A DNA stretch of 64,000 bases from Bispira polyomma (Eukaryota). Shown piece after piece: positions 57,548 to 62,474 of the stretch. The first letter of the stretch is position 1; each line of letters opens with the position of its first letter. A program made the translations under genes and the position numbers. The DNA is taken from positions 22,320,001-22,384,000 of the forward strand of contig OZ287756.1 in NCBI GenBank assembly GCA_965649765.1. Direction: 5' to 3'. Under the pieces are notes generated by a model. That model was not told the DNA's origin. It was given only the letters and a program-made list of their open reading frames with translations, and did not search any database.

Positions 57548-59247
57548 AGACGAGGTGTGGAGAGAATGCTGAAAAGAAAAGCTGCCTGAAGAAATACCCT
57601 AAAATTGTGCTAAAAAATGTGAACCTAAAACCTACATTCAAAATGGACACGTGTAAACATGTGATACTTTAAATGAGTACATAATTGTTTCCTCTTGAAT
57701 GTGGACATAATGGATTTGCAAACTGCGCCAAAAGCTGGACTTATTTATAAGCAGGGGACATTACTATATAGCCTGAAAAGTATACATAGCAAAATATAAT
57801 CTGTTTTTGCAAACTTATTATATATAATTTATTTGAAAAACACGAAATACTGCAGAAACTGCTATATATAGATTATTGCTATGATGTTAATATATTACCT
57901 GCTCTAAAATTATTCTCACTGATATTGAGAATACAAGTTGTGTGACTACAATTAAGTACAATAATGATACTCTGTGCGTATTCTAGAAGAGTATTTGACT
58001 ACAGTACCTATGATGATATGATGATACTACTGATCTCTATAAAGTTATGCTGAATGCACTGTGTATTTGTGTCTGTTATTATATATATATATGTGCACAG
58101 CATTATTGTATTATTTAATATGTTAAAATATATGTTATATAAAAGGACACACCACTTGTATTTTCTTTAATGACCCTCACACAATAACGAATTATACAGA
58201 TGATTTGTTTTCTACAAGACAGATTTGAGACACCCCAATTTGGTCCATGTGTCTTAGTTGTACACATTGAAGTGTAAACAACTTAATTGGGTTCAGTACT
58301 TTGAATACTGGCAAATGCATTGGTTATTAAGCTCATATTAGCAGGCGGGACTGTTGCCATTCCCTATCTGATAATAGTAAAATAATTCTTATTCATAAGA
58401 ATTATTATTACTTCAGAATCTTATCTCTCCAAACTCCCCCCCCCCCCCCCCCCCCCAGACACCCTTAGTTCTTTTTTTTTTTTTTTTTTTCTTCTCGATG
58501 GGTTAATTGATCCTGTTGAAGCACATTTAAAGATGCCACACATCAATAATGTACGTTAAAAGTGCAAAAGACACAAAATTATTTATATGCTTATTTCCAA
58601 ATTGGCACACAATTGTTCACAAAGAGATTTCAACCTACACGCAAGTCAAATAACAGTAAAATTAACATCCTCATCGTCAGTATTATTGTATTAAATAATT
58701 TTCTTTCCCTTTTTTTTCTACTTTTGGAACTACTTCAGGTTACCTTATCCTTTGCCGTACTCTACTAGATCTATAATATTGTGTAATAAGATCTACATCT
58801 CCACGGTTATTTGTTGGTATTTATGTTTTTCTACCCTTTTTTACATTAAATTCTGTACAATTCTGTACATTTATTTATTACTATTTATGATTTTTCTACT
58901 CCTTTTACATTGACTTTTTATCTCATTTTGCTGTTCTATATTGTAAATTTACCAATATAACCAATATTTACCAATATAATTATTGTCTCATCTTCTGTCT
59001 CATCTTCTGTTTTCTGTTGTTCTATATTGTAAATTTGCCAATATAATTATTGTCTCATCTTCTGTTGCTACATGTTGGTGTGGTTGTACTTAGCTTAAGG
59101 TCAGGCTATAGTGTGGGGTGCTAGGGTGCCCGTGAGTCGCCCACGGGATGAAGAATTATGCGGTGAGTTGTAGGGACAAGCTTTCTGAGGCTCCCCACTG
59201 TTGAGTTCAGGTTAAGGGCGTCTTCTTTTTCTACAACCTCACTAGGC

Positions 59248-62200
59248 ATGTTTCTGCTTCGGGTTGTCCTTTTTTCAGCACTGTTTGCTGTGGCTATGGC
59301 TCATAGGTATGAGTTGTTGCATCAGAGTGTTGCTCATACATCAGCAACCTCATTGGCTAAAGTAGCAAAAAAATTTTCATACACTTGTTCTTGTCGTAAA
59401 TTTCCTATCACCATTAATGGAAGAGGTCTTGTCTTGTTACTTTTACTCGCCGGCGATGTGTCCCTTAACCCTGGTCCTGTCATGCTCGGGGTGTTAAATG
59501 CTAGATCCGTGAGGAACAAGGGTCCACTCCTTACAAATATTGTGACATCGCACGACCTCGACTTCCTTTGTGTTACTGAGACCCATGTCCGTCTATCTGA
59601 TATGGATAGCTTCTTACGGTCTGTTACTCCTCCAGATTTTGTGTTTCCTCAAACGCCTCGTCCCTCACGTATTGGTGGCGGTGTTGGTTTCTTCATCAGA
59701 TCCTCCTACAAACCAAATAAAATAGATTCTCCTGTCTATCAATCCTTTGAAAATATGGTGGTGTCAATTGGGCTTCATGGCCACTCACTGTTGCTTGCCT
59801 GCGTCTATCGCCCCCCAGGATCATGCACCTGTAACTTTTTAGAAGAATTTATGTCTTTTGTTGGTTTCTTGTCTTCCATTAACAGTTCATATCATATCTG
59901 TGGTGACTTTAACATCCATGTTGATGCACCAGTTGGTGACGGTCATAAATTTATGACCTTTCTTGATTCATGCGATTTAAAACAGTTAGACAACCTACCC
60001 ATCTGCATGGTCACATTCTGGACCTTATTTTATCTCCTTGTGATCAGGATGCTATTGTGGATGTCAAAGTCTGTGATTTCATATCGGATCATGCATTAGT
60101 CAAATGCTCAATTGCCTCTCCCCCACAGGTGGCTCATATTCCCAATACAGTGCATTATAGGAGGTACCACCGTATTAACATGTCTGACCTCCGTACTGAT
60201 CTTGAGAGTACTTCCTTTATTAAGTCACCTGCCAATTCTGTAGCCAAACTTTATGAACAATACATACATGACTTGGGTGATGTACTAGATAAGCATGCAC
60301 CACTTGTATCCAGAATGTCAAAGAAAGATTCTGTGCATTGGCTCTCTGATTCTTACCGACGGGCAAAATCTCTCAGGTGCCAATATGAAAGAACTTGGCG
60401 AAGGGCCAAGAATCCATTAAATAGAAGTCGACTACGTCGCCAGATTGCTCGGTGCAATGTACTTGTTAACGAGGATAAGTCGGTGTATTACAGCAAACTT
60501 ATCTGTGACAACAGTCACAAATCCAGGAAGCTGTGGCACGAACTGCGCAAGACCCTTAATATGGATACCAATGTGGCACTCCCGTCCCATGATTCTGATA
60601 AATCACTAGCTGATAAGTTTGCTTCCTTTTTTTCGGACAAAATTAAGAGAATTAGAGATACTTTTGTTGTCTCTGGAACTAAAATTGATGTTCATCCTCT
60701 TTCTGATCCCCCGGAAATTACTGCCTTTACCAGAGTCTCTGAAGATGATGTTAGTAAGATAATAAGTAACTCGCCTACAAAATCCTGCATGTTGGATCCA
60801 TGGCCAACATCTCTTATTAAAGAATGTATTGATATATTACTACCATCCATTACAAAACTTGTAAACTGCTCACTTACGGAGGGACATGTACCTGCTGGTT
60901 TTAAAACAGCTGTGGTTACTCCTCTTATTAAGAAGGCTTCTCTTCCGGTTGATGACCTGAAGAATTATCGCCCTGTATCTAGTCTTAGTTTCATATCAAA
61001 ACTGGTTGAATGCGTGGTTGCTAGGCAACTGTTAGATCACATCTTTGTCCACAACTTAGACAACCCATACCAGCCTGCGTATAAAACTGGTCATTCGACT
61101 GAGACAGCTCTTCTGTCTATAAAAAATGAAGTTCACCTATCTTTGTCAAGAGGGGAACCTACTGCCCTGGTATTGCTCGATCTCTCTGCTGCCTTTGACA
61201 CCATTGATCATTCCACGCTTCTCAGTTGTCTTCAGACTTGGTTTGGAGTTACGGGCTCTGTTCTTAAATGGTTCACTTCCTACTTAACTGATCGTTATCA
61301 GTCGATAAAAATTGGCTCTACTCTGTCCGATCTTTGTAAACTCTTGTTTGGTGTCTCTCAAGGTTCTGTTTTGGGCCCTCTGTTGTTCTCATTATATACT
61401 GCTCCTCTCAGATTGGTTATTGGCAAATACACAGGAATAAAGTTTCATTTTTATGCAGATGACACCCAAATTTATGTGCACCTATCCAATAAAAATACAT
61501 CTACTGCCTTTGAACAGTTGAACAGGTGCCTTGACGATGTGAAAGAGTGGATGTCAACTGGTAAACTCAAACTTAATCCCGACAAGACTGAGTTCATAAT
61601 CTTTGGCTCAAAACAACAGAGGGATAAGTTGAAAGCATTGTTTCCAGTTGACATCCTGGGTAGCCCTTTCAGTCCAGCTGATTCTGTCAAGAACCTGGGT
61701 GTATGGTTTGACTCTGACTTTTCTTTATCTAAACACGTTCAGAGTGTCTGCAAAAGCTGTTTTATGCAACTTCGTGACTTTAGACGTGTCAGACGGTTTC
61801 TCACTTATGATGCTTCTATACTTGTGGCCAATGCCTTTGTTAGTAGTAGACTGGATTACTGCAATTCACTTTTCAGGAGTCTCTCAAAGTTTAATTTACG
61901 CAAATTACAATGCATTCAAAATAGTGCAGCTAGAATCAAACACCAGTCGATACACTAGTATAACTCCTGTTCTTAAGAAATTGCATTGGCTCCCTGTTGA
62001 ACAGCGTTCAGCGTTTAAGACAGCTACAGTTGTTTATAAGTTTCTCCACACTGGGTTTCCAAAGTATTTTGCCCCATATCTTTCCACTTACAGTAGTTCC
62101 TACAATACCAGACGTAGTCAGAGTGGTAGTAATTTCCTTGTTGTTCCGAAGTTCCACCCATCTATTCAAAAGTTGGTTAAACAGTTTGGTCACAGCTTTG

Positions 62201-62319
62201 CTTTTGATGCTCCCATTGTTTGGAATGGTCTTCCTGATGTGATTCGTGCTTCCCCCTCACTAGCCTGTTTTAGAAAGAAGCTTAAAACCCACTTGTACAC
62301 TAAAGCATATCCACCTTAG
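59248..62319 (+). pseudogene. LINE endonuclease/reverse transcriptase ORF (~1020 aa when repaired)
   Basis: Three overlapping ORFs (59248, 59970, 61648) join at frameshifts near 59989 and 61937; no in-frame stop in the repaired path. Confidence 0.9.
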
Positions 62320-62418
62320 TCTCAATCATCCCCCGGTGCGCTCTATGTTGCTGACCCTTTTTCTGTCCCTTGATTTTGGAAATTGGATAACTGTCTTTTG
62401 TGCTGGTGCGCCTTAGAG

Positions 62419-62474
62419 TCCCCTTTGTTAAGGGGAGATTAAGCGCAATAAAAGTCTAATTACAATTACAATTA
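62419..62474 (+). other. LINE 3' stem-loop, AATAAA and short-repeat tail
   Basis: TCCCCTT-TGTT-AAGGGGA hairpin 62419-62436; AATAAA 62447-62452; AATTACAATTACAATTA. Confidence 0.75.

Follow-up and report, generated by a model that had tools for sequence, protein, structure and literature searches.

A single-ORF LINE of the CR1 group

The window, by which we mean the whole 64-kb stretch of DNA analysed here, carries on its forward strand a ~3.7-kb copy of a single-ORF APE-RT non-LTR retrotransposon (58754..62473), whose limits come from alignment with 29 other copies. These do not share one 5' start, some beginning at 58754 and the majority at ~58858; homology finishes at ~62471-62473. The 5' UTR (58754..59247, + strand) has short tandem repeats together with five small uORFs (2-18 codons), no ORF1 being present between the 5' end and the first codon of the coding region, and its last ~150 nt include blocks conserved with a 78%-identical sister family from another assembly. 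The coding region then specifies, on the same strand, an APE endonuclease domain (59479..60130, the end being approximate; Pfam PF03372), a reverse transcriptase domain (RVT_1, PF00078, E = 2e-32; 60927..61706, corresponding to residues 320-579 of the ORF at 59970-61958) and a C-terminal region that ends at the stop codon (61707..62319).

In place of poly(A), the 3' UTR on the + strand ends with a terminal stem-loop (62395..62454; minimum free energy -24.1 kcal/mol, z = -3.44 relative to shuffles), a stretch that is 93-99% identical among copies, and a short (ACAATT)n-type tandem-repeat tail (62458..62473), where copies stop after 2-4 units and unrelated flanks begin. A 3' end of this kind, with a stem-loop and short repeats, is typical of the CR1 group (CR1/L2/Rex1/Crack). 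Together with the succession of APE and RT in one ORF (PF03372, PF00078) it places the element, at group level, as an ORF1-less CR1/L2-group LINE with a CR1/L2-like tail.

The family is young and high-copy, with more than 1000 first-look candidates in the genome, 97-98% identity in the 40 that were scored and full-length open frames in at least 16 of 121 scored matches, and it is probably still active. The copy in the window is dead: measured against other copies, it has lost 4 nt after 59983, which breaks the frame of the APE domain, and 5 nt after 61935, which breaks that of the C-terminal region, though the leader described below is itself intact. Only natural copies were used in these comparisons.

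A three-part leader precedes the endonuclease

The ATG at 59248 starts a 283-aa ORF, the first 77 residues of which form a leader (59248-59478, +) lying directly 5' of the Pfam Exo_endo_phos domain, with RVT_1 further downstream. The leader begins MFLLRVVLFSALFAVAMA|HRY and finishes LVLLLLLAGDVSLNPG|P, and between these ends it carries C47-S48-C49 and a K/R patch. It can be divided on the + strand into a signal-peptide-like segment (aa 1-18, 59248..59301), in which an n-region, MFLLR, leads into 13 uncharged, hydrophobic residues, with A-M-A immediately ahead of H19; a variable, basic linker containing the C-S-C motif (aa 19-51, 59302..59400), poorly alignable between families; and a 2A-like 26-mer (aa 52-77, 59401..59478) consisting of F-P, a Leu-rich helix and G-D-V-S-L-N-P-G|P, where S replaces the canonical E. 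The 2A-like motif directly abuts the APE domain, its putative skip site falling between 59475 and 59476.

AlphaFold2 modelling, performed on an intact relative rather than on the window copy, predicted a helix at aa 2-26 (pLDDT 73-80), very low confidence for the linker (pLDDT <50 at aa 22-49), a second helix at aa 58-67 within the Leu-rich tract, and a confident APE fold (pLDDT >90) from residue 78. The anatomy described in the first-pass annotation was thus borne out by the ORF, Pfam and AlphaFold2, and the low pLDDT at aa 22-49 led us to reject a folded domain for the leader. Pfam matched no family to the leader part of the ORF, and an ESM Atlas search with the 77-aa leader returned no credible relative (best score 0.77, below the useful threshold). 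Across relatives, whole leaders are 73-155 aa long.

The 2A-like motif has a non-canonical core

A degenerate DNA pattern for G-D-[VI]-x-x-N-P-G-P had one match in the window, with 0.00 expected from 100 shuffles. The leader shares with class A 2A peptides the C-terminal N-P-G-P (aa 74-77), the residues at positions -8/-7/-6 (G69, D70 and V71) and a Leu-rich tract (~-19 to -10), with six Leu at -10 to -14 and -16. At -5, where the class A consensus G-D-[V/I]-E-x-N-P-G-P requires E, the window family has S72, and we therefore term the motif 2A-like rather than a canonical class A member. Within the clade (n = 42) the surrounding positions are nearly fixed (G 38/42, D 40/42, V or I 40/42), and the E site is occupied by S in 17 cases, A in 13, E in 6, K in 3, H in 2 and N in 1, so that S or A is the commonest residue (30/42). 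In 20 aligned leaders, which were picked for carrying NPGP, L67, G69, D70, N74, P75, G76 and P77 are invariant, and G-D-[VI]-x-x-N-P-G-P is retained through differing synonymous codons in nine coding sequences.

A 2A sequence in LINE ORF2 is known biology and not a discovery. Such motifs have been described at the ORF2 N-terminus of Rex1, L2, L2A, Crack, CR1 and Ingi/L1Tc elements (Odon et al. 2013, PMC3708506; Heras et al. 2006), where their occurrence 40-80 aa into ORF2 correlates with loss of ORF1 and a down-regulation of ORF2p has been proposed (PMC3708506, PMC3894237). The leader resembles these examples in the location of the motif 40-80 aa from the N-terminus and just upstream of APE, in lacking ORF1, and in combining a Leu-rich tract before G-D-[VI]-x-x-N-P-G-P with a heterogeneous E site. 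The E-to-S variant itself has been reported in CR1-2_NV, Crack-3_NVe and L2A-1_NVe (PMC3708506). In contrast to the published motifs, where S or A is occasional at the E site, these residues predominate in the window clade, for which purifying selection on the motif is also shown (see below).

The E at -5 corresponds to E14 of FMDV 2A, which contacts 28S rRNA, and among E14 substitutions in deep mutational scans only E14H retained high activity. Moreover, reticulocyte lysate assays showed no activity for the E-to-S motifs of Crack-3_NVe and L2A-1_NVe (PMC3708506). By analogy, S at this site is expected to weaken or abolish StopGo. The earlier suggestion that the E-to-S change may tune or abolish skipping meets a published record that speaks against efficient skipping with S.

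A signal-like segment recurs at the leader N-terminus

Signal-peptide-like segments were called by hydropathy and -3/-1 heuristics, requiring a short positive n-region, a 7-15-aa uncharged h-region and small residues at -3 and -1. The window leader shows this pattern of a Sec-type signal, namely R5, the 13-aa run V6-A18, and A16 and A18 before H19. The feature is common among diverged relatives: in 23 of 27 leaders, the 11-aa window of greatest hydrophobicity begins no later than residue 11, with 6.0 such cases expected by shuffling, and the summed statistic reached 43.1 compared with -0.1 (sd 4.3) in shuffles. The hydrophobic run has the size of a signal peptide (median 13 aa, range 8-21), and a -3/-1-compatible site follows it in 22 of 26 leaders. 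The predicted signal-peptide-like character of the N-terminus thus holds, by simple rules, in most diverged relatives, including leaders that are no longer alignable in sequence.

Over codons 1-20, an excess of T is seen at the second codon position (0.5-0.85) but not at the first or third, indicating that the hydrophobic start is encoded in frame; an origin in DNA composition was rejected on this ground. The other frames at the leader start contain mostly stops or are less hydrophobic. Signal-like starts were found in 20 of 27 2A-bearing relatives versus 11 of 32 2A-less ones (p = 0.004), the compared leaders being homologous and the counts across relatives not independent events. Since about one third of the 2A-less relatives also have a hydrophobic start, the segment may serve some purpose unrelated to skipping.

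Two papers on 2A in LINE ORF2 do not mention a signal-peptide-like segment upstream, and neither contains the terms signal sequence, signal peptide or hydrophobic; we found no signal peptide in LINE ORF2 leaders in the literature searched, which covers few subscription journals. A conserved signal-like segment upstream of a LINE 2A thus appears undescribed.

The leader is maintained by purifying selection

Both the conservation and the dN/dS checks proposed in the first-pass annotation were passed. An open leader is retained in 26 of 30 other genomic copies, 23 of which have an intact NPGP, and 42 of 120 database relatives likewise carry this arrangement immediately ahead of the APE domain. 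Nei-Gojobori comparison of the family with its 78%-identical sister (P0001) gave omega of 0.23 for the leader and 0.11 for the rest of the ORF; by part, the values were 0.28 for the signal-like segment, 0.25 for the linker and 0.11 for the 2A 26-mer. In this pair dS was ~1.1, equal in leader and ORF body, and dN of the leader was 3-4 fold below dS. Subfamilies C1 and C2 of the same genome, an independent and less diverged pair, yielded a leader omega of 0.22-0.24. Purifying selection on the leader was significant in both comparisons (Fisher p ~1e-6 and 5e-6), the linker being under moderate constraint (omega 0.15-0.25 over the two). A third pair, with the P0002 family, was dropped because synonymous sites were saturated. 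This leader architecture is thus shared by many diverged families, specified at the protein level and under purifying selection.

Parallels with dual-targeting and attenuating 2A sequences

In Strongylocentrotus purpuratus NLRs, a signal sequence combined with StopGo leads to dual ER/cytosol targeting (Roulston et al. 2016, PMC4981915). The first-pass annotation proposed this logic for the LINE, with an N-terminal signal sending unskipped product to the ER and skipping leaving it in the cytosol. In the NLRs, however, which are host immune genes, a single 26-aa element with the canonical D-V-E-x-N-P-G-P serves as both signal and 2A, whereas in the leader of this mobile element the hydrophobic start (aa 1-18) and the non-canonical 2A-like core (aa 59-77) lie ~40 aa apart and would be separate modules.

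Leu-rich eukaryotic 2A-like peptides, including 59% of the tested ORF2p ones, reduce protein abundance (bioRxiv 2026, PMC13405545). The leader resembles these peptides in its six Leu at -16 to -10, its ORF2p context and a core that departs from the canonical one; that study used isolated 20-mers and did not consider the native upstream protein. According to a report on Ty1 (PLoS Genet 2014, PMC3945221), Gag and its RNA undergo SRP-dependent co-translational ER localisation, a precedent for a retrotransposon that targets its own mRNA to the ER co-translationally. Ty1 as described there differs in being an LTR element that targets Gag rather than an enzyme and in having no 2A, so that the analogy is functional only.

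A model for dosed release of the APE-RT enzyme

We infer from its sequence that the leader may direct both ER targeting and skipping. In the model we favour, at somewhat less than an even chance, an ORF1-less LINE keeps its leader under selection for signal-mediated ER capture, a 2A-like stall or partial skip, and a dosed supply of free APE-RT. Once translation arrives at N-P-G|P (codon 77), the signal-like segment would already be outside the exit tunnel and open to capture by SRP, which would recruit the LINE mRNA under translation to the ER membrane. Stalling of the ribosome by the Leu-rich 2A-like peptide would follow and, in a fraction of events, the leader would be released (StopGo), leaving APE-RT as a separate, signal-free protein starting with Pro. 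Unskipped chains would remain fused to the signal and either be routed to the ER or undergo degradation. The outcome would be low, tightly dosed free ORF2p made by membrane-bound ribosomes, with the leader substituting for the attenuation that an upstream ORF1 normally gives. Two considerations bear on this scheme: the 2A reaction can be inhibited when the upstream part is translocated into the ER (PMC2978324), which counts against it, and near-zero skipping combined with a cleavable signal would place all APE-RT in the ER lumen, which seems incompatible with an actively amplifying family.

A more far-reaching version, which we regard as speculative and rather unlikely, would pair an SRP-type signal with an S/A-type StopGo or stall at tunnel-clearing distance, the enzyme being made on ER-bound ribosomes and a small signal-free fraction released; the whole would form a portable 5' module, exchanged between lineages along with the promoter and functionally replacing ORF1 in ORF1-less CR1-group LINEs.

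Why 2A-like sequences occur at the ORF2 start of LINEs that lack ORF1 has awaited an answer since 2006-2013, with a vague down-regulation as the sole proposal. The conserved signal-like segment upstream offers a concrete, testable model of SRP capture, stall or skip, and a split of ORF2p between ER and cytosol. If correct, it would extend dual targeting, shown only for the sea-urchin NLRs, to mobile elements; should the signal-like segment prove inert, the finding shrinks to another 2A-bearing CR1-group LINE family. In addition, the clade comprises dozens of natural D-[VI]-[S/A]-x-N-P-G-P variants under selection, though E is thought near-essential, and these would be useful for defining the requirements of the core motif on non-mammalian ribosomes.

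Alternative explanations

The leader could instead act solely as a translational attenuator, with a Leu-rich 2A-like stall, perhaps aided by the hydrophobic start, lowering ORF2p through stall resolution or degradation, with no ER step and little StopGo separation. Throttling of retrotransposition, which the first-pass annotation also raised, is not a new idea, having been advanced by Odon et al. and Luke et al. The presence of 3-6 Leu at -19 to -10, and in particular at -13/-14, is tied to lower protein abundance (PMC13405545), which suits the leader's Leu positions, and E-site variants skip poorly. Yet attenuation leaves unexplained an N-terminal run of signal size (23/27 leaders) that is kept under selection, and this run, lying at least 55 residues upstream of the stall site, would be outside the exit tunnel during stalling. 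We consider pure attenuation possible but on balance unlikely. An uncleaved anchor, tethering full-length ORF2p to the ER or outer nuclear membrane with APE-RT in the cytosol and the 2A-like stretch persisting as a remnant or second hydrophobic element, strikes us as improbable. Basic or His residues behind the run in many leaders (H-R, R-K, K-S) would agree with the positive-inside rule and a cytosolic C-terminal side, the hydrophobic start also occurs in some 2A-less relatives, and weak skipping predicted for the S variant would be harmless. A median run of 13 aa is, however, short for a membrane span, and N-P-G-P, invariant among the aligned NPGP-bearing leaders, is kept through synonymous changes at omega 0.11, which argues against a remnant.

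Another reading makes the released leader the functional product, whether as a small peptide that is secreted or resides in a membrane, or as a stand-in for ORF1 that works in trans on element RNA or the host. Odon et al. suggested discrete products from functions upstream of 2A, and the linker is basic, contains Cys and His and is moderately constrained; but the same linker is barely alignable between families and falls below pLDDT 50, neither Pfam nor the Atlas yielded a relative, and leader length varies widely. We judge this reading decidedly improbable, and found no evidence in favour of the export route raised in the first-pass annotation. Least probable of all, and already disfavoured, is that the leader has no function at the protein level, its hydrophobic start reflecting nucleotide constraints (an internal promoter, a T-rich 5' end) and its 2A-like motif being inherited baggage. 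LINE 5' ends contain internal promoters, and the 5' UTR blocks conserved between families would fit such constraints. Against this, the excess of T is limited to second codon positions, dS of the leader equals that of the body with dN 3-4 fold lower, and the hydrophobic start survives in leaders that have diverged past alignability.

A bipartite leader precedes the endonuclease domain

The LINE copy, delimited by homology among copies (~58754 or 58858 to ~62473, + strand), opens its ORF at the ATG at 59248 with a 77-residue leader (59248-59478), and these residues match the first-pass annotation, which had described a signal-peptide-like start and a 2A-like end. The start, M-F-L-L-R and then an uncharged hydrophobic run of 13 residues that closes in A-M-A just ahead of H19-R20, leads into a basic linker containing C-S-C. 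The leader ends in L-V-L-L-L-L-L-A-G-D-V-S-L-N-P-G|P, with six Leu at -16 to -10 of the 2A-like motif. Pfam places Exo_endo_phos immediately 3′ of the leader and RVT_1 farther on. A DNA pattern for G-D-[VI]-x-x-N-P-G-P had a single match in the window, where shuffling predicts 0.00. For residues 1-330 of the longest natural ORF of the family (L048), aligned with 20 relatives, AlphaFold2 (mean pLDDT 80) predicted a helix at residues 2-26 (pLDDT 73-80), very low confidence at 22-49 (pLDDT <50), a short helix at 58-67, and a confident APE fold beginning exactly at residue 78. As modelled, the leader does not resemble a folded domain.

Besides short tandem repeats, the 5′ UTR (400-500 nt) contains just tiny uORFs, and the element therefore lacks ORF1. 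Its 3′ end carries a stable stem-loop (z = -3.4), then two to four ACAATT-type repeat units in place of poly(A). A stem-loop with a short repeat tail and no poly(A) is typical of the CR1/L2 group, and by its 3′ end the family is of this style. Two small deletions, of 4 nt after 59983 and of 5 nt after 61935, have left the window copy dead. It belongs to a large, young family: the genome holds >1000 first-look candidates, identity among the 40 scored is 97-98%, and at least 16 of 121 scored matches lie in full-length open frames. An open leader is kept in 26 of 30 other copies, 23 of them with D/N-V-S-L-N-P-G-P intact; serine (S72) at the E site, the position of Glu in canonical 2A (E14 of FMDV 2A), is therefore a family state and not a private mutation. 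Blocks of the 5′ UTR (window 59093-59234 versus L058:1550-1720) are strongly conserved between this family and a 78%-identical sister family from another assembly (L058), while the sequence between them has diverged; the blocks may represent an internal promoter or RNA element.

The signal-like start recurs among relatives

A word-based protein search with the L048 ORF (926 aa) returned 120 relatives. Of these, 42 contain N-P-G-P within residues 1-200, in every case in the form of a Leu-rich tract with G-D-[VI]-x-x-N-P-G-P directly ahead of the APE start. The E site is occupied by S in 17 of them and by A in 13, and just 6 have E. In 23 of 27 representative leaders, taken with annotated starts, the 11-aa window of highest hydrophobicity in the pre-2A part starts within residues 1-11, where residue shuffling expects 6.0, and the summed N-terminal hydropathy excess lies ~10 sd above shuffles. 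The uncharged run has a median length of 13 aa (range 8-21; 26 leaders) and is followed, in 22 of these 26, by a site that fits the -3/-1 rule. The hydrophobic start is reading-frame specific: in eight coding sequences, T makes up 0.5-0.85 of codon position 2 over codons 1-20 and far less of positions 1 and 3, and most of the remaining frames are interrupted by stops or have lower hydrophobicity. Signal-like starts were found in 20/27 2A-bearing versus 11/32 2A-less relatives (p = 0.004, with relatives that are not independent samples), so they are not exclusive to 2A-bearers.

Seven distant LINE ORFs without N-P-G-P (P0035, P0047, P0072, P0079, P0082, P0096 and P0104) have a signal-peptide-like hydrophobic start. 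In the five ORFs whose N-termini were inspected in full (P0035, P0047, P0079, P0082 and P0096), a basic module of the R-G-x-R-[GA]-G type lies between this start and APE. Another relative, P0057, joins a signal-like start to a G-D-I-H-P-H-P-G-P variant. Judging from these N-termini, the hydrophobic start may be more widespread in this LINE group than 2A. The same signal-like and 2A-like leader occurs in at least five diverged LINE families (L052, L055, L056, L057 and L058) that coexist in another eukaryotic assembly, ERZ22147071, from the ENA metagenome analyses. Three further relatives (P0040, P0084 and P0111) carry P-G-D-G-H-C-L-L-H at the N-terminus, ahead of APE-RT, a motif resembling that of OTU-type deubiquitinases; similar deubiquitinase-ORF2p fusions have been reported in other taxa (2026 preprint).

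The leader is maintained by protein-level selection

The sister family encodes the full 77-aa leader from position 1818, upstream of the gene-caller start. Between the two families, Nei-Gojobori omega was 0.23 for the whole leader, 0.28 for the signal part, 0.25 for the linker, and 0.11 for both the 2A 26-mer and the rest of the ORF, values that are rough because dS (~1.1 for leader and body alike) is near saturation. The leader is roughly two-fold more relaxed than the enzyme domains, and constraint on the 26-mer equals that on RT. In a second LINE family of the same genome (family C, L071-L076), which has an 89-aa leader, A at the E site and two subfamilies, leader omega between subfamilies was 0.22-0.24. 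Fisher tests of synonymous versus non-synonymous changes gave p ~1e-6 and 5e-6 for the leaders and 0.02-0.04 when only the signal parts were tested, and nine coding sequences encode the 2A-like core with differing synonymous codons. Together, these results indicate that the leader is maintained by selection on the protein; the expectation that it would be conserved and under purifying selection was borne out. The leader is conserved, selected and bipartite.

A model for signal capture and ribosome skipping

Neither the 2A-like motif nor its E-to-S form is new. Such motifs lie 40-80 aa from the ORF2 N-terminus in Rex1, L2, L2A, Crack, CR1 and Ingi elements, their presence correlates with ORF1 loss (Odon et al. 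2013, PMC3708506), and Glu is often substituted, including E-to-S in Nematostella elements (PMC3708506). A signal peptide upstream of 2A in LINE leaders is mentioned neither in the 2A papers cited here nor in anything retrieved by full-text searches of the accessible literature, within which the conserved signal-peptide-like module appears undescribed.

This module yields a testable model. Leaders in the clade span 73-155 aa and the ribosome exit tunnel holds roughly 30-40 aa, so the signal-like run is clear of the tunnel when the G|P codons are reached. We infer that SRP could capture the nascent chain through this exposed run and that ribosomes would stall on the Leu-rich 2A-like peptide; some of these events would release the leader, so that APE-RT continues without a signal, and unskipped chains would be diverted. 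The model agrees with a published idea, in which 2A takes over the attenuation exerted by ORF1, and supplements it with a targeting step.

Serine at the E site poses the main difficulty. The family is plainly amplifying, so with zero skipping a cleavable signal would be self-defeating, and one of three explanations must hold. The S/A core may work on the host's ribosomes, a reading for which the published record on efficient skipping is discouraging: two E-to-S motifs showed no activity in reticulocyte lysate (PMC3708506), and only E14H among E14 substitutions retained high activity (2026 mutational scan). The hydrophobic run may instead be an anchor that leaves the enzyme in the cytosol, or it may be no ER signal at all. 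Leu-rich eukaryotic 2A-likes, including most tested ORF2p ones, are tied to lower protein abundance (2026 screen, PMC13405545). As regards targeting, an N-terminal 2A-like sequence of sea-urchin NLRs is itself the signal sequence and gives dual ER/cytosol targeting (Roulston et al. 2016, PMC4981915), and the 2A reaction can be inhibited when the part upstream of it is translocated into the ER (De Felipe et al. 2010, PMC2978324). Overall, the first-pass proposal of two products from one frame, a small ER-targeted peptide and a free APE-RT, is partly supported, namely in its evolutionary predictions.

The 5′ UTR and leader behave as an exchanged module in family C

Subfamilies C1 (L072, L073) and C2 (L071, L074; example family C locus, G000:C6:63886311-63887126 in the same genome) share 97-100% identity beyond ~nt 250 after the ATG. 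Over the leader and ~340 nt of alignable 5′ UTR their identity is just 58-87%, and the sequences farther upstream cannot be aligned. The stretch coding for the 2A-like motif, which runs to nt 267, contains the switch, and dS between the subfamilies is 0.57 in the leader versus 0.054 in the body. The 5′ UTR and leader therefore behave as a module that lineages have exchanged, and the 2A-like motif marks the junction.
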